A stretch of DNA of 64,000 nt. Origin: Utricularia gibba (Eukaryota; Plantae; Magnoliophyta). Location: positions 1,736,001 to 1,800,000 of the forward strand of contig NEEC01000012.1 in assembly GCA_002189035.1 (NCBI GenBank). Reading direction: 5' to 3'. How positions within the stretch are numbered: the first letter of the stretch is position 1; the number at the start of each line of letters is the position of its first letter. The notes under the pieces were generated by a model. The model did not search any database. It was not told the origin of the DNA and was given only the letters and a program-made list of their open reading frames with translations. Shown here in pieces: positions 15,059 through 28,600 of this stretch. A program made the position numbers and the translations under genes.

Positions 15059-16153
15059 TCACTTCTGACCCTTCTTCTTTAACATGTCTCCCAACATTCT
15101 TATGCCAGAGGCCTTCCTCTTTTCGCTGTCGAACACATTCTGTGGATCGTCGATCATTGCGGGCGAGCCCATGGCATATCCAAGTGGGTTTATACCGTGT
15201 GCGTCCATGGAGCCACACCTCTCTGATATCTTCCGGCAGTTTGCATCCGCCCCTGCTGCAAGAACAGCTGCTGCTGCATCTGCTGCTTTCTTCCATTGCT
15301 CTGTATGCACGGTTAGTCTCTTCATTTCGTCGTCCATTTCTACTCTTGCTCTTTCGACAACTTCCATCCTCGAGTTTATCTGCATTACTGTGCTTCTGCT
15401 CTTATCAAGCTCCTGTTCGGCATCAGCCAGCTTTATTTTCAGTTCATTGATTTCGGATTGAGCAGTTAGGATCTTCGCTGACTTCTCCTCAAGCTGGGAG
15501 ACTAAGTTTCTGTTTTGGAGGGATAGAAGTTCCAGATCTCTGTTCTTCCGTTCTAAACTGGCCTTCAGAATGGAAATCTCATCTTTTACAGGCTCTTCAT
15601 CTACAGGCTCGATGGCTGCTTCCTCCTCTGGGACTTCGCAAACATCAGCTTTGAAAAAAGCATCACCAACTGCTTCATGCCGATCTTTGTTAGATGCATC
15701 AATCTGAATCCCGAAGCTCTTATCTTCAACTTCCACAGCGCTATGAAGCTTGTCCTGTTTCTTAGCTGATTTCAGTTGATTATGTGCAGCTTTCTTTACA
15801 ACATCTGTCGAAGACAGTTGATCCTTTAGACACTTGAGTTCCTCCTGAGCCAGTCCGAGTTGAGATTCCAAGTCTGCGATGCGAGTCCCAAGCTTCTTTG
15901 GATTCGAAAAGGATGAAATACGGGGTGATGGAGTTTCAGATGGTGATACTTTAGGACTCTTTTCAATCCTCGCACGAGAACGCAATGGATCCGAATTGGA
16001 GCTCGATGTTGAACTGGCCGGGGCTCGATTCGGAGGCCGCTGAACAACTTCTGCCACTCTATATTCAAAGAATGGAAACAAGAAATCACCCCAGGTGACG
16101 AGTAGCAAAAACTTAGCTCACAACAGTAATTTCAAGTACCTTGACCCTCTCAT
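15059..16153 (-). CDS. ICR: Interactor of constitutive active ROPs (ICR1/ICR4-like, RIP family) coiled-coil scaffold; exons 16153-16140 and 16058-15059 (337 aa)
   Basis: KKLGTRIADLESQLGLAQEELK and C-terminal EQWKKAADAAAAVL..RKISERCGSMD..SGIRMLGDMLKKKGQK. Start MRGSR joined by an 81-nt GT-AG intron; leader intron donor GTAAGA at 16572. Confidence 0.9.
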
Positions 16154-16344
16154 TTCTCCCTTGGAAAGGTAAAATCAGTTGCTCAGATGGGCGAAGAATG
16201 ATTCATACTGCTGCTTTATTGACAGAATCAGAAGGCTGCTAATCAGGATAACGAGGCAAAAAGAGCTTCAAATGCTGAATAACCTTGATGAAAACAGCAT
16301 ATAGATTGAAAATGGAAGCTTTATCTTTCAAACGAAGAAATTTT

Positions 16345-16660
16345 CCTAACTCAAAGAACAATTCACATGGATCTACACTAAAATGCAACATAACAGTAAG
16401 CCGACAAAGTCCCAGAAACCACTGCCCACAAAGACAGCAATTCTGCAGCCACTGAAATCAACAAAAACCAACGGCAGCCCAACATTTTAAACTATACATA
16501 TACATCTCTAGTCGAAGAAGTTCTCCATCCGAGAACAGTGCTGTAAGGGTCGAAAGTGGGAGCGAATCTTACACTGGTTCCCGGGTTTCATTCATCCTCC
16601 CATCCTCGAAAATGGTCGGTGCACGAAAATGGGTTTCGAGTGGAACTCAGTGGATGGCGT
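16345..16660 (-). promoter_or_regulatory. 5' leader exon and first intron of ICR; diverged third copy of the shared leader cassette
   Basis: Collinear blocks match 22651-22939 and 24921-25209 (see findings). Confidence 0.7.
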
Positions 16661-17053
16661 TATAAGACTGCGTCTACGTGAAAAGGTGCCTCGATTCACG
16701 AGCAGACAGGAGAAAGGGGTTCAAATTGTGGGACACAGCAGCGAGTGAAAAAGTTTTGAACTTTTGAAAGAATGGGGCACATTCAAAGGCCTTGTTTGAT
16801 ATGATGGTACAAGATTGGTTCATGGTAGGTTTAATAAAATTGTGTTATTTGGTATGTGAGTATAATTATACCTTATATATAGGTATAATAATCATTATAT
16901 CCATGTAATATCCTCAAATATGGGTATATGTATATCCAAAGGGAGGTATGGTATTTTTATACCCACATATTTGGATTTAGCCAAACCCAAATAATTTAAA
17001 CCCACTAATACCTAAACCACATCAACCAAACAAAGCCAAAGTGTTGAAATACA

Positions 17054-17984
17054 GGGTCAATTTGATAAATGTCAATCTCTCCCCATTGAAATTTGAGACA
17101 TTTACATGTTTCAAAAACTTTTTGTAATTTGGTCATCTCCAAAATGATCCATTAAAAGAAAATTATTTTTCATTCAAATACACTGACATGTTACTGTATA
17201 TACATGATATATTGATTTTTTTTAATTATTTATTTTCAAAGAAAACCTAATTTTGTTGATGAATATATATAATTACATAGTATTGTATATAATAGTATAA
17301 AATATGCAACAACAAATGAATTGTTAAATAATTTACAAATATAAAACAAATAATAACATACTATTATAGTTAATTATATATAAACATTTATATAATTAAA
17401 TTATTAGTGTAAGCAATCACATAATTAAATTATATAAATATATATACATAATTTATATATCAAAGATTAAATCCATTTTTTTTTATATAAAATGAATGAT
17501 TCAGAAAAAAATTGATGTATTTTTCGTTAATTTTCGTTTTCGAATTAAGTGTATCTCATACACTTACGGAAATACAATAATTTGGAAGAGTCATGCAGTA
17601 TCTACATTCTGCAATCTTCAAAAATCATTATAATAATTTAATTATACAAATTTTTATATATAATTAACTATAATAGGGCGTTATTATTTTTTGTATTTGT
17701 AAATTATTTAACAATTCATTCATTATTGTTTTATATTTTATACTATTATATACAATACTATGTAATTATATATATTTATTAAATAAATTAGTTTTTCTTT
17801 GAAAATATACAATTAAAAAAAATTAATATATCATATATATACATTGACATGTTAGTGTATTTGAATGAAAAATAATTTTATTTTAATGGGTTATTTTCGA
17901 GATGCCCAAATTGCAAAAAAAATTTAAAAGATGGCCATGTCTCAAATTTAAGTGAGGATAGATGGCCAATTCTCAAATTAACTA
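17054..17984. mobile_element. Non-autonomous Mutator-like (MULE/foldback) element with about 350-bp terminal inverted repeats
   Basis: Arms about 17054-17405 and 17627-17984 are reverse complements (e.g. attatttttcattcaaatacactgacatgt vs acatgttagtgtatttgaatgaaaaataat). Flanks ttgaaataca / ttgaaagata look like a degenerate 9-10 bp TSD. No ORF. Confidence 0.8.
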
Positions 17985-19084
17985 TTGAAAGATACGAGCT
18001 TTGAGGGGTGGGGTGCTCAATCCTCTCTTCGTTTGTCGACCGACTGCAATCCCAATCCAATTGCACAGACACGCCAAAACACACCGAAACAAGACAAAAA
18101 GAGTTCCCCACGTTCCATTTGATTTCCTGGAGTTATGATTTTAAAAATATATTAAATATATTTTTAGAATATTATACAAAAAACAGTTAATTAATATTCA
18201 GAAATTGATTTAAATCAATCATCTTCTCCTTCATAACCCAAATCATTTTCATAGTCAATTCTTGAAATTTAAAGTGCCTATTAGTTTTTGAAAACGCACT
18301 CTAAGTCTTTGTTTAATTCAGTTTCTCAAAAAATACATTGTGATAAATATTTCTAAAAAAATAAAATTGGTTATTCACATTTTTTTTAAAAAAAATAATA
18401 ACGTTCTTAAATTATGATCTTTTAAATTACATCTAAAATGTTTTTTTAATAAACATAAATTATTATAAAAAAATTTAATTTCTCAATTATTCTCAGAATC
18501 CATTTTTAAAATATATCCAAAGCACAACATTAGGATTAGAGACGATAAATATAAATAAAAAATGAAAATTGAAATTACTGTTTTTACATTCATTCAAGTG
18601 TTTAATTTTTTTATTTAAATGAAAAAAGACAGAAGCATGTGAAATTAATGTTGAATCCAACTACTACAATACACATTAAAGGCCACGTGTAACGTGCGCA
18701 AATGAATTTAGTGGGCCCATGTGGCCCAAAAACTATAGGGATGCCCAAAATTCATGTACAAAAATCTTCTAGATTAACAAATTTTAAAAGCATCAATCAT
18801 AATGATTAACGAGTTTACACGAAGCAAAATGAATAGAGATTTTCGCAAGAATAATAAAATGATAATTTATTATCCGAATGAATATTAATCGATGAATTAC
18901 TTAATTACGGCATGAATTAGAAAAACTCTAGGCTCCATTATCCGATTATAAATAATTCAAAGGATAAACAAAATAAATTAATTAATTATGCAATAAATTT
19001 ACATAGTATTAAATAGTGTAAAAGATATGAAATTCATTGAATCTTATCACTTAGAAAAAAAAGGGTATTTAGTCCATCATCACT

Positions 19085-19435
19085 TAAAATTAGTCATGAA
19101 CACAAGTATGTACTTATTGAGTCACGAGTTGAATTCGATAAGTTAGATTAAAAAATATAACTCATCGAATCACGAGTAGATGAGTTAGATAATTAGACTC
19201 AACTCGTATTACGAATTGATCCGAATTATATATTTAAAGTACAAATAAATATCTATAGTAACAACCAGATGTTTATGAAAAGAATAACAGGAATGCATAA
19301 CATGGATTATGCGTTAGCATGTGCTTGTCATAACATATGAGTTGAATCAAATCAAACTCAAGTAAGTTATTCATACTAATTCCATACCACTCAACTCACG
19401 AGTAAGTCGGGTCAAGTCATACCCACGTAGGGCTA
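19085..19435. mobile_element. Possible degenerate hAT-type MITE remnant
   Basis: Clustered GAGTT/AACTC(G) short motifs in both orientations at the two ends of an AT-rich core; no clear TIR or TSD. Confidence 0.3.
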
Positions 19436-19742
19436 CTTGAAATACCATGCGTACCTTTTTTTTATTCTAAAAACTTTTTGAATTTAATTACTTATTACGA
19501 ATATTTTAATAATATTATATATATAATTATATTATATTAAATACATAATGAATAATTATTTATTAAAAACGGATCCATGTTCTACACACTTGTCGATTCA
19601 TCAACTAAATTTCACACTTGGTGTGGGGCGGGAACCACATGATGCCATCCATATAAGCTATGTTGCATTGTAATTTGAAGGGATCCACGCGGACACGGGG
19701 ACACTTGAAAATATTTGTACTACAGGAATCCGATACCGGGAC

Positions 19743-19768
19743 ACGCACGCACGCACGCACGCACGCAC
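19743..19768. repeat. (ACGC)6 microsatellite downstream of the TMN12-like stop
   Basis: acgcacgcacgcacgcacgcacgcac read directly. Confidence 0.9.
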
Positions 19769-19918
19769 ATTCTAGGAACAGACGCACAAGCAACCATGAC
19801 ATGTACGACTTAAAACTTACTTCAGTCTCAATGGATTCGAACAAGAAAAAAAGAAAGCCACTCACGCAACAGACAGCTGCCTGCGAGAGGAATAAGCTCA
19901 AATCTGTGGATCAGCGGC

Positions 19919-21897
19919 TCAGTCGATCTTGACGGATGAGAAAAGGTAATGCACAAAGTAGAATGAGGTGAGGAAGCCGATGGTGCCGGTTGAGAGCATG
20001 ATGGCGATTGACATCAAGAGGGAGTAGCCGAGGTAGAGCATGGCGGAGACTGGTCCGCTCAGGCTCTGGAGGTCGAACACCAGGTAGTTGATGGAATACA
20101 GGAACACATAGACGGAGACCGAGCCGGAGGCGAAGAATGCTTTCCACCACCAGGCCCAGTCCTCCACACAGAGATGCATGTAAGTCAAGACAACCGAAAC
20201 TTCAGCGCAAACGATGACCAGCAGCAAAAGGACGATCAGAAGGAATCCAAACACATAGTAGAACCTCCCGAGCCAAATACTAGATAGGATGAAGAAGAGC
20301 TCGATGAAGAGAGTACCGAATGGGAGAGTTCCGGATCCAAGAACAAGCAGCCAGGATGGATATTTGCGTGCGGGGATCTCTCTTGGGATCTGGTTCGTCC
20401 GGACAGGGTATTGAATAGGCGTGGCCTTTGTGCCCAAGTGCCCACCCAAGAGCGTGAGAGGAACTGAGATACAAAACCAGAGAGCTAGAAGTTTGAAATA
20501 TAAAGAAATCGGTATAGCCCCGGTACTTCTGCTTCCCCACAGGATGAAATTCAAGATAGTAAGAATTGCAAAAGCAATGCCGGGAAGAAACAAGCGATTG
20601 ACCAAGCAATCGATCGCCACCCTTCAGAAGACCCTTTAATAGTTGCCCACAATCTCACACCAACATAACCAGCAGCAATTCCAAGGAAAAGATAAAGCAT
20701 TATCATTCCGGTCAACAGCATACCCCTAGAAGCAGGAGAAATGAAACCCAGGGCTGCAAAAACAATAGTGACAACTGCCATCCCAGTAATCTGAACCCCA
20801 TCACCAACCATCACACAGAGTAACTTTGGATGAGATGGTTCTCTAAAGACATCACCGACCACAAGCTTCCACCCTGAAAGCTCCTCATTCATCTGGGCCT
20901 GTGCTTCCTTATCCAATTCTTCATACCTTGTGAGATCCCTTCTCACTGTTCTCAAAAATATGACAAACACAATGCCAGCTAAAAAGAAAATAACCATTAA
21001 AGAGTTGAGAATTGAAAACCAGTGCACACGAGCACCCTCCATCTTCAAATAAACATCCCACCTAGATGGCCACCGGATATCACTTTTTACAAACTCAACC
21101 TCATATGTAAATGTGACTCTCTCCTTCTCTCGTATCACCTGAGAATTCTCCAGTTCTTGTGGACAGTTCACTGGTTCAATCGTATCATACATGTGCAGTT
21201 TTGCCATCTTTTCAGTGTCACGCTTTACACTACATGGAACAACCTCAAAGCCAACAATCTCATACCCAGAAGCCTTCTTGTTATCAGCTTCTGTGATAAC
21301 ACCCATGCCTTCTTCTCCTGTACCAATTATCTGCACGCCAGCTCCTTCGTACTCATGAATCAGCACTTTAAATTTCAGGTGGTTGATGATGTAGTCATCA
21401 TTGCTGTTTGGAGGACTATATCCCACTGGGTAACCAGTCCACAGGATTTTCACCCCATTTTGGATGGCATACCTCATAGCTGGAAGATTATCAAGAATCA
21501 TGTTAACTTGATACAGATCCCTAGTCCTCTGCTTCAAAAGCTTGACCTCATACTCACTCAATGGGGAAGTGGTACAGAGGAACAAAGACTCATTGACATT
21601 CATCTGAAAGCGGTAGGGGGAATTGTAAATCTGATCACCCATCAGTAGCTCTCCAAGATTTTCAGCACTTTTTTTGATGTTTCCGATAGGTTCACAATAA
21701 GGAAGACTATAATAGCTGAACGGAAGCTCTGTCTCTATGGATGTCAATGAATTCACTTTCGCAAGGATTTCATCTTTAGTAGAATATGTATGCATATAGC
21801 TCCCCGGAAGATAAAACGCACTGCATGCTTTGACTAAGAAGAACAAGCATGCTAATGGAAGGCAGAATTTCCATCTAGAAATATGACATAAGGCCAT
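19919..21897 (-). CDS. TMN12: Transmembrane 9 superfamily protein (TMN12-like), intronless CDS with a 1-nt frameshift near 20580-20584 (659 aa if repaired)
   Basis: FYLPGSYMHTY, KSAENLGELLMGD, VHWFSILNS, GWKLVVGDVFR, PVRTNQIPREIP, C-terminal SSVKID. The two ORFs join as CFFP|GIAF if one base is added. Leader-intron acceptor ttttgcag ends at 21967. Confidence 0.9.
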
Positions 21898-22494
21898 CGA
21901 AGAACAGAGGATGCAGAGAGAAATCCTCAAACCAACAATGAAAAGACAAGCTAATAGTAGTGAAATCTGCAAAAGGAAAATTTATAATTTAGCATAATTT
22001 TGGTGAAAAAAGTGCCAAAAATGATTCATGAAATCCTTTCGAATTGTCAGTTAGTTACCAAAGGAAAGAAGATACCTACAACACGCATCCACACACTCTT
22101 AAAACAATATCTCATATAAAGCTCAAGCTAGAATTGAAATAAAAGAATATGCATATTTCCTAAAAACGTAAAGATAGCACACGAAATTCATCCAGATGAA
22201 CAACAATTGACAACATGAACAAAGACACATATAACCTATCCAGAGATCAGTCGCTACAAAGCCAAAAAGTGCAGACAAAACATAATGAGAGTACGTTTTC
22301 CACTTTCTAAGTTTCCGCTATGCTGTCAGAAGGGCTTCACTTTCTAAGACTTTGGAACCAAAGTATAACCAGAGACACCAGTGACACACGCAAAGAAGTG
22401 GTCTCAAAGTATAAGATCGCTTTAGAAAGCATTTTGAACTTACCGTAGATTTGTTCTCAATTCATCAAGTAGGGTTGAAGTTGAAGAACATGTC

Positions 22495-23080
22495 AATAAG
22501 CAGAACCAAGTCCAGTAAACGGAATGAATGAGACCACAGTGGAATTCGAACAAACTGGAGGACCTGGCGTTTGTTCAGATTATAGAAAACCACGCAAACT
22601 CAAAATACAGGTAATAAGCAACCGCAGATCTACGATAATCGAACTATCCCAACTCACAAGAACAATTCAGCTGGATCTACAACAAAATGTAACATTATAT
22701 GCGAAAAATCGCAGAAACCAGTACCACAAAAACAGAACATTTTCAACCGCCCCAATCAAGAGAAACCAACAACTCATGCTTATATCCTTAAAGCCTAAAC
22801 CCCATTCACTATTACATCTCTCTATCTCTAAGATAATCGAAAAATTCCCCAAAAATTTAAACCTTACAGGAACAAACGAATCCAACTTTCGCTCCCAAAT
22901 TACTTCCTTCTCTGCAAATCGTCGGTGAACGAAAATGGGGATGAATCATGTAGGCAAGTAAAAGGCGTTGAAGGCGCTCTCTGTTAACGATATTGGGCCA
23001 GAACGAATTAAAATGGGCCTCCAGTAATCAAATCGAAGCCCACGTAAGCAGAGGATTTATTCTCTGGCCCATTAAGCTGA
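22495..23080 (-). promoter_or_regulatory. Promoter, non-coding exon 1 and intron 1 of the TMN12-like gene; duplicate of the bS6 promoter/leader
   Basis: Collinear similarity to 24708-25350; GTAAGG donor at 22867; site II motifs (TGGGCC/GGCCCA) at about 22995-23072. Confidence 0.8.
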
Positions 23081-24057
23081 GGTTTCATAGCATCGTGGCT
23101 TGTCAAGCTTCTCCTCCAGCTTGGCGACACCGTAAACGCGACGGTCTACGACATCGGTCCCACATCGTTTCTAATCATTTCTTGCTGCCGAAATGACGGA
23201 TTAAATAATATTATTTATTAACAATTTGACACAACATTTTTTCTTTTGTATTAATTTTCTCTTTAAATCTTAATTTATTTAATAAATACTCAACCACAAA
23301 GATTAGAATTACTTTTATTTTACTTCCTCTAATTTATTTTAGAAAAAACTAATAAATTTTATTAATTTGTAATATGCCTTGATCTATATAATAATAGTTT
23401 TTTTTTATTTTGAGTTTTGATTTATACATTCATTTCTTTTTAATTTTTCTTTTTGGTAAATAGAAATTAGTCAATTTTTTGCAATTCAATTTATACGATT
23501 TTCTAATGATTTGAATTTTTTTAATAAAAGACGTAATTATATTTCAAAAAACATTACCTTATGTGAGTTTTTTTTTAAAAAAAATCATATTTGATATTGA
23601 TTCATTTAAAAAAAAATACTAAGCAAAGTTTTAATCATGCAAATTTTTATTTATGGGCCCTTGTTCCATTCTTTGAGAAATTTACAAAACTCATTAAATT
23701 ATCATTTATTCATACTGTTAAAATTTTTGGATGTAATTAATTTTTTATTATTTTTAAAGAGTGATAAAATTGGTCCCAAAAAAATTAGTAATTATTATTC
23801 ACATAAATAATTTGATATACATAATAGTACCTAAGCGTTTATATATTTGATAAAAATAGTTTTTAAAAAATCTTCATATTTAAATCATTTTATTACATTT
23901 ATGTATATTTTTTCTTAATTGTAAAATTTTTTTGTCTGACCACATTTGACCATGTTGGAATATCATTGACTTCACAGTTACCGACAAATTAAACGTCAGA
24001 AAGCATACCAAGTGTGATATAATTTTCAATTTTAACCTGACTACCGTACTTCTTAGG

Positions 24058-24610
24058 TCATTGCTTACTCCCATCGTTGATTTGTGGGTATCCAGCTTCA
24101 GCATCATCTTCTTCATCTTCACTGTCATCATCTTCTGTTGTTTCTCCACCACGAGATGAGCTCCTGAAAAGCTTCAGATCCATATCAGCTTCCAAATCAT
24201 TGAAAAGATCATCCCCAATTTTCACATCACGGTGTTTAATCAAAAGCCACCGCAGTAGTCTGTCTTCCTTGTTCAGATAGTACAGCTCGCTGTTGAAGCT
24301 TGGTGGTGTCATCATTGTCATTTGCATCAGTTGAGCCTACATAAATAATAATTCTATGTTCATCAACATGGAGAGTAGTTCCAATAATACTGGAAGCAAC
24401 TGAACTCAAGAAAATGGCGCACAAAACCTGATAGTAACGACCATCCAGCTTCTTTATGCCATAACCCAGTTGAACACTTCCAAAGGACTTCACATCTGTA
24501 AGAACTCCATTTTTTCTGATGACATGCTTCCCCAATCTAGTAACCAGATCCAAAATAGCCTCACTGGTTACATTTGGCTTCAACAAAAGCATGCAGTTAT
24601 AAAGAGGCAT
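24058..24610 (-). CDS. RPS6: Mitochondrial ribosomal protein bS6; exons 24610-24428 and 24336-24058 (153 aa)
   Basis: MPLYNCMLLLKP..GVLTDVKSFG.VQLGYGIKKLDGRYYQ|AQLMQMTMM..ELYYLNKEDRLLRWLLIKHR, then an acidic tail. A 91-nt GT-AG intron joins the two ORF-track frames. Confidence 0.9.
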
Positions 24611-24707
24611 TTTTTTCTTGATCGATTTTGCCTCTAGACCTGTAAAGAAAAATTTCATAACAAAATTATGATAACAAATGCAGGCTTGAAGTTGGAGAAC
24701 AGAAGTC

Positions 24708-25350
24708 AAAAAGCAGAACAAAGTCTAGAAAACGGAATGAATGGCAGACCACGGTGCAATTCGAACAAACAGGAGGACCTGACGTTTCTTCAGATTAAAT
24801 AAAACAACGCAAACTCAATACTAGGGTCAGAAGTCATCGTCCTCACAAGCTACATCCACAGTAGTCGACTTTCACTAATTTGAATAATGTGCGCATCCTA
24901 TAATATGCATATAAATCTCGAACTACAATTACAATTCACCTGGATCTACAACAAAATGTTACAGCATTATATGCAAAAAAATTCCAGAAACCAGTACCAC
25001 AAAATCTGCAACATCCCAAATCAAGAAAAATTAACAACTCATGCTTATACCCTTAAAGCCCAAACCCCATTCAATATTGCACCTCTCTATCTCTAGAATA
25101 ATCGAAAAATTGCCCAGCTCAAGGACAAATTCAAACCTTACAGGAACGAATCCGACTTTCTCTCCCAAATTTCTTCCTTCTTTGCAGATCGTCGGTGAAC
25201 GAAAATGGGGAAGAATCATGAAGCCAAGTAAAATGCATTGAATGCACTCTAGGTTAAGGATATTGGGCTAGGAAAATTAACATGGGCCTCTAGTAATCAA
25301 GTCGAAGCCCATGTAAGCAAGGGATTTATTCGCTGGCCCATTAAACTGAA
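24708..25350 (-). promoter_or_regulatory. bS6 promoter/leader (donor 25141, acceptor ending 24640); site II cluster shared head-to-head with the kinesin
   Basis: TGGGCT/TGGGCC/AGCCCA/GGCCCA motifs at about 25263-25342; GTAAGG donor; tttctttacag acceptor. Confidence 0.75.
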
Positions 25351-25610
25351 CTTCTCACGACGCAGGTAGGAGGAGCATTCAAATTTCAAAAAACTAACGG
25401 CTTTTTCAGCATGACGTTACAAACGAATTTAACCGTCCCACAGAAACTGATTCAAAACTCGAAACAGCATCCTCTTGTAACATGGAGCATCACGAATGCC
25501 ACGCTTTCTCTCTGTGTTAACAACCCCGTTCTTACTTTATCATACATTATTTGGCAGCTGAAGTTTCAAACTTCTTGCAATAGATCTGTTTTGTTGATTA
25601 GAGTTGAAAT

Positions 25611-28600
25611 ATGGAATTCTTGGATGAATGCCCCATCAGTCCGAGCAAGAGTGATGGTAATTTCGCACAATTTTGTATCTTACATCGTTTCCTGATGTTT
25701 TTGGGACATGGGTTTATGGTATTAGACAATCTTTAGCAAGAAATCTTTGTTGATAGAAACTGTGTCTTCATCTTCATCCAACTGCTAGATGTTCTCTGTT
25801 TCAGGTAAACTAAGGGCTAGATTTTTCTTGACATCCCCTGATTTAGTATGTATTGGATCACCTGTTACTGATCAAGAGTCATTTGAATGTGTGAGCGGAA
25901 AAAGAGATACTATTTCTTTAGCTGAGGAGAGATCTGAATTGGAGGATGATTCCTGTAACGCCCCAGCTTCAGATTTGAAAAACTTGTGTCCTGAGATTTC
26001 TTTCGAGCTCGTTCAAGCACTATTAGTGCAGAGACACGCACTAGTGATTCCAATTCTTCAGTCGAGGACAAAGAGGGATTTGCAGAGGGTGTTGAACTTC
26101 AACAAGAAAGGATGTTCTTGTCAAGCAACAACCATCTAAGCCGAGCCAACGCCGCATCCAATGAAGTTATCATGTCATCTGAGCCTGAGCCGGAGATATT
26201 GAAGGTACCTCGCATAGCTTCAAGCAACAACGATTTAAGCCGAGCCAAGTCTGCATCCAATGAACTTATCATGCCATCTGAGCCTGAGCCGGAGATATTG
26301 AAGGTACCTCGCAGAACAAGCTATGTACTCATATTTTTTTTAGAGGTGATATAAGCAAACTGATAGAAGGTTTTAGTTCACCTCAACAAAAAATGCAATG
26401 CTGCTGATTGATGGAAGTAGTATTTTGTAATTGCTATAAATTTTGGGTGTGTTATTAGCAAGATTGATGGTTGAGAAGGCTTTGTATGCATAATACAGCT
26501 AGGATCTTCTATGAAAGTGTTGGGGTGCTAGAAGAAATCATTGATGGATTTGATTATCAACTTCTATTTTACAGAAGAATGAAATTTGCATTGTTGATGG
26601 AGACCTTGACAAGCTTCGAATTGAAAATGAGTTAGAAAAGAGGGAACTTTTGGATACAACAAAGGCTTTACAGCAACTTAGAAATGAATACAAGGCCAAG
26701 GATAAGGAATGCCAGGAAGCGTTGAAATCATTGAATGAACTGAAGAACGAGCTAATGCGAAAATCGATGCATGTTGGATCACTTGGTAAGGAAAGCAAGT
26801 GGGATCTTCAATTGCTCAAGGTAGTTAACTGCATCTGCTAATCCTTCATATGTTTTTTTTTTCTCTTGTGTAGCCTGTGCAATTGAAGGTCAAGTTAAAG
26901 AGAAAAGCCAATGGTTTTCATCTCTGAAAGAATTAACAAGAAGCCTAAAGGTGCATCAAATTTTTCCTTGTTTCGTGTTGCGGATTTTACCCAAACTCAA
27001 TTCGGGTTCTATTATTGCAATGAAACTCGAAATGCAGCGCACAAGAAGCTCTTTTTATTGTCATCATCCCAAATACTACTTTATATATCATTGGTAAACT
27101 TTATTGCAGATTCTCAAGATGGACCACTTCAGTTTGCTACAGGAAGCGTCGCAACTACAGCATTGTGTTGCAGAGATGGATGGTGTAAAATCAGCTATTC
27201 AGTCTACATGTAGCATCCTATTCACACAAAGAAGTTCTTATTCTTCTTCTTTTCTTATTGTTTTTCGGTAGTCTTATCCTTAATCTGGTTTAAATTTCTG
27301 GTAGTTCAACAGCATCTTCAACTAGACAGAGATATTGGATTGAAGTTCCTCCAAGCCGAAAAAGAGAGAAAAGAACTTTACAACAAAGTACTTGAGCTGA
27401 AAGGCAAGGATTTGGTTCTTTGAGTTTTGGATCAAACTTTCCCTTTGTCAACAGCTTCTAGAAAATGTGCATTGCTTTCTTTCAGGTAATATTCGAGTGT
27501 TTTGTCGTTGTCGGCCTCTAAATGCTGAAGAAATTGAAACAGAAGCATCAATGGCAGTTGAGTTTGGGTCAAAAAAAGATGGAGAAATAACTCTAAAATC
27601 AAATGGAATACCAAAGAAAACTTTCAAGTTTGATGCAGTTTTTCCTCCTGAAGCTGATCAAGCTGAAGTCTTTGAGGAGACAGCTCCACTTGCTAATTCT
27701 GTTCTAGATGGATATAATGTATGCATATTCGCTTATGGGCAAACTGGCACTGGGAAAACTTTCACTATGGAGGGAACTGCAGATGCTCGTGGTGTCAACT
27801 ACAGAACTCTTGAAAAGTTGTTTGATATCATTGAGGAAAGGAGAAACACTTTTCACTATGAGGTATCAGTGAGTGTGCTAGAGGTTTACAATGAGCAGAT
27901 ACGAGATTTGCTTGCCTCAGAATCACCCTCAAATGCTGTCACAAAGAGGTAGTTCAACACTTGCATATCTGTCTTCCTTGTTCATAGTTTCTACCCTAAA
28001 CTTCACAGTTTTCTTAATTAATATCGCTTCATCTGTTATGGGAGGATTTCAGGCTAGAGATCAAACAAGTTGGCGACATAGGACATCATGTTCCAGGTTT
28101 AGTTGAAGAGCAAGTGAACAATGTAAGTGAGGTTTGGGAAGTCCTACATACTGGAAGCAAAGCGAGGGCAGTTGGATTAACTAGCATGAATGAGCACAGC
28201 AGCCGGTCTCATTGGTAAGCAGTGAATTTTCGAGCTTTTAAGTTTTCTCCATCATGAAAAGCATAATGGTCCTAAAAGAGACATGGTTCATGATTGTAGC
28301 ATACATTGCGTGATGGTGAAGGCTGAAAACCTTATCAATGGAGAGTCCACAAGAAGCAAACTCTGGCTTGTTGATCTTGCCGGAAGTGAGAGATTAGCCA
28401 AGTCGGAAGTGCAAGGGAGCAGACTTAAAGAAACTCAGAACATTAACAGATCACTTTCTGCACTTGGGGATGTGATATCAGCTCTTGCAACAAAGAGCCC
28501 CCACATTCCCTTCAGGTTCATAAATCTTGTAACTTCATATGATACGTAACAAATGCCTGAACTTTTTCATGTTTCTGTTGGCGTAGGAATTCCAAGCTTA

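Follow-up and report, generated by a model that had tools for sequence, protein, structure and literature searches.

Paralogous leader sequences at three consecutive, unrelated genes in Utricularia gibba, two of them with a paralogous promoter

We analysed a 64-kb stretch of nuclear DNA from the plant Utricularia gibba (contig NEEC01000012.1, positions 1,736,001 to 1,800,000; hereafter the window, with positions counted from its first base), in which ICR, TMN12 and bS6 are three consecutive genes on the minus strand. Two paralogous copies of a non-coding cassette were found upstream of the TMN12 and bS6 coding regions, and a third copy in the leader of ICR. This arrangement is likely to have arisen by local, non-transposon segmental duplication of an expression module (promoter, exon 1, donor and leader intron), with an earlier event at ICR. 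The copies are as follows.

24682-25349, minus strand: bS6 copy, comprising a promoter with site II motifs (TGGGCY/RGCCCA), non-coding exon 1 and most of the leader intron (nhmmer E=3.5e-238)
22471-23080, minus strand: TMN12 copy, detected by blastn, local alignment and nhmmer and spanned by a DNA contig (run X3, record 5)
16343-16662, minus strand: ICR copy, older and partial, limited to the leader exon and ~230 nt at the start of the intron, with no site II cluster

Transcript evidence was taken from Logan contigs of three RNA runs (X5, X6 and X8) and one DNA run (X3) on positions 19500-25450. X3 is a DNA run of an independent study, X8 is an RNA run of study P5, and X5 represents a diverged accession whose RNA shows ~1-1.5% differences from the window in exons.

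Three copies of a non-coding cassette

The TMN12 and bS6 copies were collinear paralogs by blastn (E=2e-131), and their local alignment score was 354.5, compared with 14.7±1.9 for dinucleotide shuffles (z=177). Identity was 86.1% over 596 aligned positions (Kimura two-parameter distance 0.155), and the bS6 copy was longer by ~55 nt, in indel blocks. These results bear out the original prediction, which had placed ~600-bp collinear paralogs upstream of the two genes, and make them slightly longer. By part, identity was 84.6% in the promoter, 92.9% in exon 1, 83.8% in the intron and 89.0% in the distal 91 nt, exon 1 being conserved only modestly above the rest (92.9% vs ~84%). The spacing from one copy to the other is 2265-2270 bp. 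Using blastn with each upstream region, and nhmmer, we found three copies and no fourth in the 64-kb window, and the conserved leader block, searched as an exact pattern, had no match among metagenome contigs.

The coding regions downstream of these copies are unrelated to one another, as had been claimed. The ICR gene encodes an ICR1/ICR4-like coiled-coil protein (main open reading frame (ORF) 15059-16108, minus strand), and its best protein matches are the 'interactor of constitutive active ROPs' proteins of Lamiales, at 45-50% identity. TMN12 belongs to the EMP70 family (Pfam E=7e-104) and is 83-85% identical to TMN12 of Lamiales. bS6 is the mitochondrial ribosomal protein bS6m (Ribosomal_S6), with its best match in Genlisea aurea (74%).

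The TMN12/bS6 duplication was also checked as a possible misassembly, and this was ruled out. The two copies differ by 14%, which makes collapse or a duplication artefact implausible. Furthermore, an X3 DNA contig runs unbroken across 21691-23110, that is, through flank, TMN12 copy and flank, at a depth (~43) like that of its neighbours; a second X3 contig extends from 23546 into the bS6 copy, to 24907; and several RNA runs cover the region.

The ICR copy is collinear with the other two across ~300 nt. Relative to dinucleotide shuffles its alignment had z=35 with the TMN12 copy and z=23 with the bS6 copy. An nhmmer profile built from the TMN12 and bS6 copies alone recovered 16343-16662 with E=1.4e-21 and nothing else in the 64 kb. 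We asked how far a chance or compositional likeness of AT-rich first introns could produce this similarity. The ICR identity is just ~64%, and its most similar block (22 of 24 positions identical) does not exceed what patchy decay would leave (permutation P=0.13), both of which would fit such a likeness; against it stand the collinear alignment and the match to a profile from which ICR had been excluded, and we rejected it as next to impossible.

Among ungapped three-way columns, TMN12 and bS6 were identical at 84.5%, TMN12 and ICR at 64.4%, and bS6 and ICR at 65.5%. The sites that ICR shares exclusively with one young copy were symmetric (16 vs 19), which makes ICR the outgroup of the younger TMN12/bS6 pair. 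Judged by these columns, the ICR copy appears to be roughly three times more diverged than the pair. The 22/24 block (16610-16633 vs 22916-22939) and the GGATCTAC block read exactly as first described, the block spacings were confirmed from the sequence, and the conserved ICR blocks seem compatible with patchy neutral decay.

Homology at ICR begins ~30 nt upstream of the conserved leader block and stops ~230 nt into the intron. No TGGGCY/RGCCCA motif was found upstream of 16633 at ICR, and the site II region has no counterpart there, so that 'one promoter for three genes' is too strong a description. Of the full cassette proposed at all three genes, the TMN12 and bS6 copies and the leader homology at ICR stood, and the site II promoter at ICR did not. 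Promoter and leader are common to two genes, and ICR shares leader sequence only.

Transcripts and splicing of the leaders

RNA contigs start and splice inside both the TMN12 and the bS6 copy, in agreement with the claim that transcripts use the cassette. The features of the two leaders are listed below, with a slash at exon-intron boundaries.

25264-25345, minus strand: four site II motifs of the bS6 copy, ~47-125 nt upstream of the point to which RNA contigs extend farthest 5'
25137-25217, minus strand: bS6 non-coding exon 1, minimum extent (X8 contig 21, 83 nt joined to exon 2)
24640-25136, minus strand: bS6 leader intron, 497 nt, GT-AG, donor AAG/GTTTGA, acceptor TTTACAG/G (X8 joint 24637 to 25135, cut +2, CT..AC)
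24639, minus strand: start of bS6 exon 2, with the ATG at 24610
24337-24427, minus strand: bS6 coding intron (X8 contig 21)
22994-23076, minus strand: four site II motifs of the TMN12 copy
22863-22894, minus strand: TMN12 non-coding exon 1, minimum extent (X8 contig 19, 32 nt beyond the joint)
22564-22862, minus strand: TMN12 intron 1, 299 nt, wholly cassette-derived, donor AAG/GTTTAA, acceptor CGCCAG/G (X8 joint 22561 to 22861, cut +2, CT..AC)
22444-22563, minus strand: TMN12 non-coding exon 2, 120 nt (X8 contig 19)
21967-22443, minus strand: TMN12 intron 2, 477 nt, GTAAGT...GCAG (joints in X8 and X5)
21966, minus strand: start of TMN12 exon 3, with the ATG at 21897

X8 had zero depth in introns and intergenic DNA and showed precise minus-strand GT-AG joints. 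Its contig 21 (410 nt = 116+211+83) joins 24220-24336, 24428-24639 and 25137-25217, and its contig 19 (426 nt = 276+118+32) joins 21691-21966, 22444-22563 and 22863-~22894. In both cases the piece lengths sum exactly to the contig; 276+118+32 follows the aligner's leftmost joint placement, and exon and intron boundaries were set to canonical GT-AG.

Both genes use the homologous donor (AAG/GTTTAA in TMN12, AAG/GTTTGA in bS6), which lies 5 nt 3' of the GTAAGG that had been named as the donor. The proposed structure of a non-coding exon 1 followed by intron 1 was found at bS6; at TMN12, part of the supposed intron 1 is the spliced non-coding exon 22444-22563. Of the 120 nt of this exon, 93 belong to the intron in the bS6 copy and 27 are found in TMN12 only (22444-22470), past the end of the homology at 22471. 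TMN12 intron 2 has no cassette homology and no paralog in the window. Its acceptor context matches that of the Erythranthe guttata TMN12 acceptor (25 nt, 88%, E=0.03), and it is probably TMN12's own ancestral leader intron.

An upstream ATG is common to the two young copies (22949-22947 and 25219-25217) and absent from the ICR copy. Differences between the young copies in its ORF (four non-synonymous, two synonymous) look neutral, in the spliced bS6 mRNA the ORF would extend across the main start codon in a different frame, and an RNA contig ends at the third base (G) of the bS6 upstream ATG. Given the substitutions, the absence in ICR and the contig end, we do not claim a peptide-coding upstream ORF.

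For ICR the leader was predicted as follows, the intron and the short second exon from the sequence alone.

16573-16650, minus strand: predicted ICR non-coding exon 1, donor CAGT/GTAAGA at 16572
16160-16572, minus strand: predicted ICR leader intron, 413 nt, with splice consensus
16140-16159, minus strand: predicted ICR 20-nt exon with ATG (16153), whose frame continues into the ICR ORF

Each of the four 31-mers sampled from the predicted ICR exon 1 occurred in four RNA runs of study P5, among them X8, which carried no intron or intergenic signal at TMN12 and bS6. The idea that ICR transcripts also use the cassette is thus upheld for exon 1 by words present in RNA, with the junctions being predictions. 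Some small assemblies of RNA runs that contain TMN12 and bS6 lacked the ICR leader words, which says little for or against co-regulation.

Origin of the copies and direction of copying

We propose that ~610-670 bp were copied 2.27 kb downstream into the 5' untranslated region (5'UTR) of TMN12. The copied piece would have held the TCP-type site II promoter of bS6m, non-coding exon 1 with its donor, and the leader intron minus its last ~45 nt, and would have landed in TMN12's original 5'UTR exon, 27 nt upstream of its donor. TMN12 would then have been transcribed from the copied promoter. Because the copied intron came without the bS6 3' splice site, its donor is joined instead to an AG within the copied sequence, making a 120-nt non-coding exon that probably ends at TMN12's original exon-1 donor and is followed by the native leader intron. 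A similar event, by divergence some three times as old, would have left the partial copy that forms the ICR leader exon and the start of its intron.

The same outcome could have been reached in two steps, if the entire bS6 gene had been duplicated in tandem and the coding body of the duplicate then lost, which would have joined its promoter and leader to TMN12. The two copies are 2265-2270 bp apart, close to the length of one bS6 gene unit, the window contains other tandem duplicates and the genome is small and deletion-prone, all of which would suit this history; no trace of bS6 exons or 3' flank was found between the TMN12 copy and TMN12, however, and two events are invoked where one suffices. 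More broadly, neither remnants of the bS6 body or 3' flank nor other paralogs were detected near TMN12 or ICR. We therefore regard the two-step route as unlikely, although it is the strongest of the alternatives. A cassette that is, or was carried by, a dispersed mobile element (a gene-fragment Mutator-like element, a Helitron or a miniature inverted-repeat transposable element (MITE)) merely sitting near genes is very improbable. It would account for the presence of three copies in only 9 kb, and the same neighbourhood contains a hairpin element (17056-17982, 260-nt arms) that is unrelated to the cassette. However, we found no terminal inverted repeats or target-site duplications at 22471/23080 and 24682/25349, and the flanks share no direct repeat. 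Helitrons have 5'-TC and 3'-CTRR ends with a subterminal hairpin and insert between A and T; the gene-strand unit here starts with TC but after C, and ends in CCCT/GCCT. There is no fourth copy in 64 kb, the X3 contig crosses the TMN12 copy uninterrupted, at a depth like that of the unique flanks it reaches, and each copy has the orientation of the gene downstream, which uses it. The suggestion that the cassette had been mobilised accordingly found no support at its boundaries.

The direction of copying was judged from architecture, since no orthologous upstream region could be aligned to the cassette DNA. In four of five relatives (present in G. aurea, Sesamum indicum, S. alatum and Salvia miltiorrhiza, absent in E. 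guttata), bS6m has a site II cluster of 2-3 motifs per 100 nt at a distance of 470-1020 nt before its ATG. TMN12 orthologs have 0-1 site II motifs and no cluster in any of four, with a telo-box in three of the four. The leader introns of bS6m orthologs end just before the ATG; TMN12 orthologs have a single long leader intron region that ends just before the ATG, as intron 2 does here. The neighbours of bS6m in G. aurea are PPR and Arf genes and not TMN12, and in E. guttata the two genes are ~2 Mb apart on one chromosome, which indicates that their adjacency in U. gibba is derived. Within the duplication model, these comparisons make bS6 the more probable donor of the cassette and TMN12 the recipient. 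The opposite direction, in which the cassette is the native promoter and leader of TMN12 with two leader introns, and bS6 took a copy and spliced the copied donor to its own acceptor, is a little less credible than even the two-step route. Relatives have leader introns in both genes, so that either could take a graft, and the bS6 homology stops 45 nt before the acceptor, as expected of a graft onto a native 3' splice site. Against this, site II clusters are typical upstream of bS6m in relatives and not of TMN12, and the extra exon and intron of TMN12 have a boundary that coincides with the end of the homology.

Several observations weigh against the proposed duplication from bS6 to TMN12. Compared with regions upstream of the bS6m and TMN12 orthologs of G. 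aurea, S. indicum and E. guttata, the cassette promoter and exon 1 aligned no better than shuffles, and the case for the direction of copying is a motif survey of modest size. Each leader junction is represented by one contig from one run (X8), and the short side of the joint between TMN12 exons 1 and 2 is only 32 nt. In X5, the introns that derive from the cassette stay unspliced in contigs of TMN12 (22445-22867) and bS6 (24501-25161), although X5 still splices TMN12 intron 2 and the bS6 coding intron, and an unspliced TMN12 5' contig in X6 retains TMN12 intron 1. The spliced isoform may therefore not be dominant everywhere. The retention in X5 suggests that the weak GTTTAA/GTTTGA donor may be used inefficiently or in a condition-dependent manner.

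Regulatory elements, related systems and neighbouring features

Clusters of site II motifs (TGGGCY), to which TCP proteins bind, are a known feature of genes for ribosomal and mitochondrial proteins (PMC3884152, PMC3212954). The 64-kb window contains four clusters of at least four motifs per 100 nt, two of which are the cassette copies. As in housekeeping promoters of the site II type, the clustered motifs lie within ~200 nt upstream of the presumed transcription start in bS6 and TMN12, which is not the case in ICR. The bS6 and TMN12 copies further resemble TCP-bound promoters in having four motifs within ~80 nt just upstream of the transcribed leader, and bS6m orthologs have similar clusters. 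Unlike such promoters, the TMN12 copy belongs to an endomembrane protein gene whose orthologs in relatives lack these clusters, and the ICR copy has none. TMN12 would now carry proximal control of the bS6m type, with TCP binding predicted.

Promoter gain by segmental duplication is known, for example from the primate LRRC37 family (PMC3371713). As there, a duplicated segment provides a new promoter and a non-coding first exon, and transcripts splice into the recipient's exons. The present case differs in being in a plant, in its 2-6 kb range, in involving adjacent, unrelated single-copy genes, and in that the leader intron was copied along and part of it turned into an exon. Paralogous non-coding segments stand upstream of unrelated genes, and transcripts of TMN12 and bS6 hold the copied exon 1 and splice from its donor; the case is thus one of promoter and first-exon capture by small segmental duplication, a known process. 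Specific to it are a captured exon that is non-coding, a leader intron that travels along and is partly exonised in the recipient, and copies of two ages at three consecutive unrelated genes. Since exon 1 is non-coding, the change would be limited to regulation and the 5'UTR.

Introns close to the promoter can enhance expression, with TTNGATYTG as a signal (bioRxiv 10.1101/269852). The cassette intron has the position of such introns, being the first, promoter-proximal and in the 5'UTR, but no cassette intron contains an exact TTNGATYTG. Near-matches were enriched in the bS6 copy only (uncorrected P=0.014) and were not common to the copies. The proposal of intron-mediated enhancement, although its position fits, therefore gains no support from sequence. 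An Rfam scan of 15500-26000 at E<=1 gave no match, and thus no described RNA family or hosted small nucleolar RNA.

The locus offers a natural experiment in promoter and leader-intron swapping, with one module at two unrelated genes and the same intron processed differently, as a full intron in bS6 and as an intron with an additional exon in TMN12. The latter shows the way in which a copied intron deprived of its 3' splice site is resolved, namely by exonisation of one of its parts, and the copies provide matched sequences with which site II promoters and leader introns could be compared in reporter assays. A wider reading, which we hold to be speculative and rather doubtful, is that in a deletion-prone, gene-dense genome the copying of ~0.5-kb promoter, exon 1 and leader-intron units onto neighbours is a recurrent form of regulatory rewiring. 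It would have placed TMN12, and earlier ICR, under elements of a mitoribosomal gene; if it were true, an endomembrane gene and a ROP-interactor gene would be coupled to growth-linked TCP/site II control.

The bS6 copy adjoins, head-to-head, the 5' end of a plus-strand kinesin gene (25350-25620). This arrangement suggests that its site II cluster may be a bidirectional promoter shared with the kinesin gene; the TMN12 copy has no divergent partner gene. In the 5' coding part of the kinesin gene there is a tandem 99-nt (33-codon) duplication with 93% identity (26121-26313).

Within TMN12, all three informative runs (RNA X5, RNA X8 and DNA X3) have an extra G after 20581. Its absence from the window breaks the TMN12 frame into overlapping ORFs (20551-21972 and 19919-20620) and probably reflects either a single-nucleotide error of the assembly or a frameshift allele carried by the sequenced plant. 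X3 DNA also lacks 9 nt at 22547, inside TMN12 non-coding exon 2, and 35 nt at 23803-23839 in the spacer, both being indel polymorphisms that distinguish accessions.

The AT-rich spacer between ICR and TMN12 contains an inverted repeat (17056-17315 and 17723-17982) with 260-nt arms, 85% complementary and 407 nt apart, and with further nested arms; it is hairpin- or MITE-like and unrelated to the cassette. Directly upstream of the TMN12 copy lies a GC-rich island of ~120 nt (23084-23200). Contigs of X5, X8 and X3 match 23084-23115 and diverge on both sides, which points to a related, expressed sequence elsewhere in the genome. The island may be a gene fragment, and both versions share an open frame on the plus strand.

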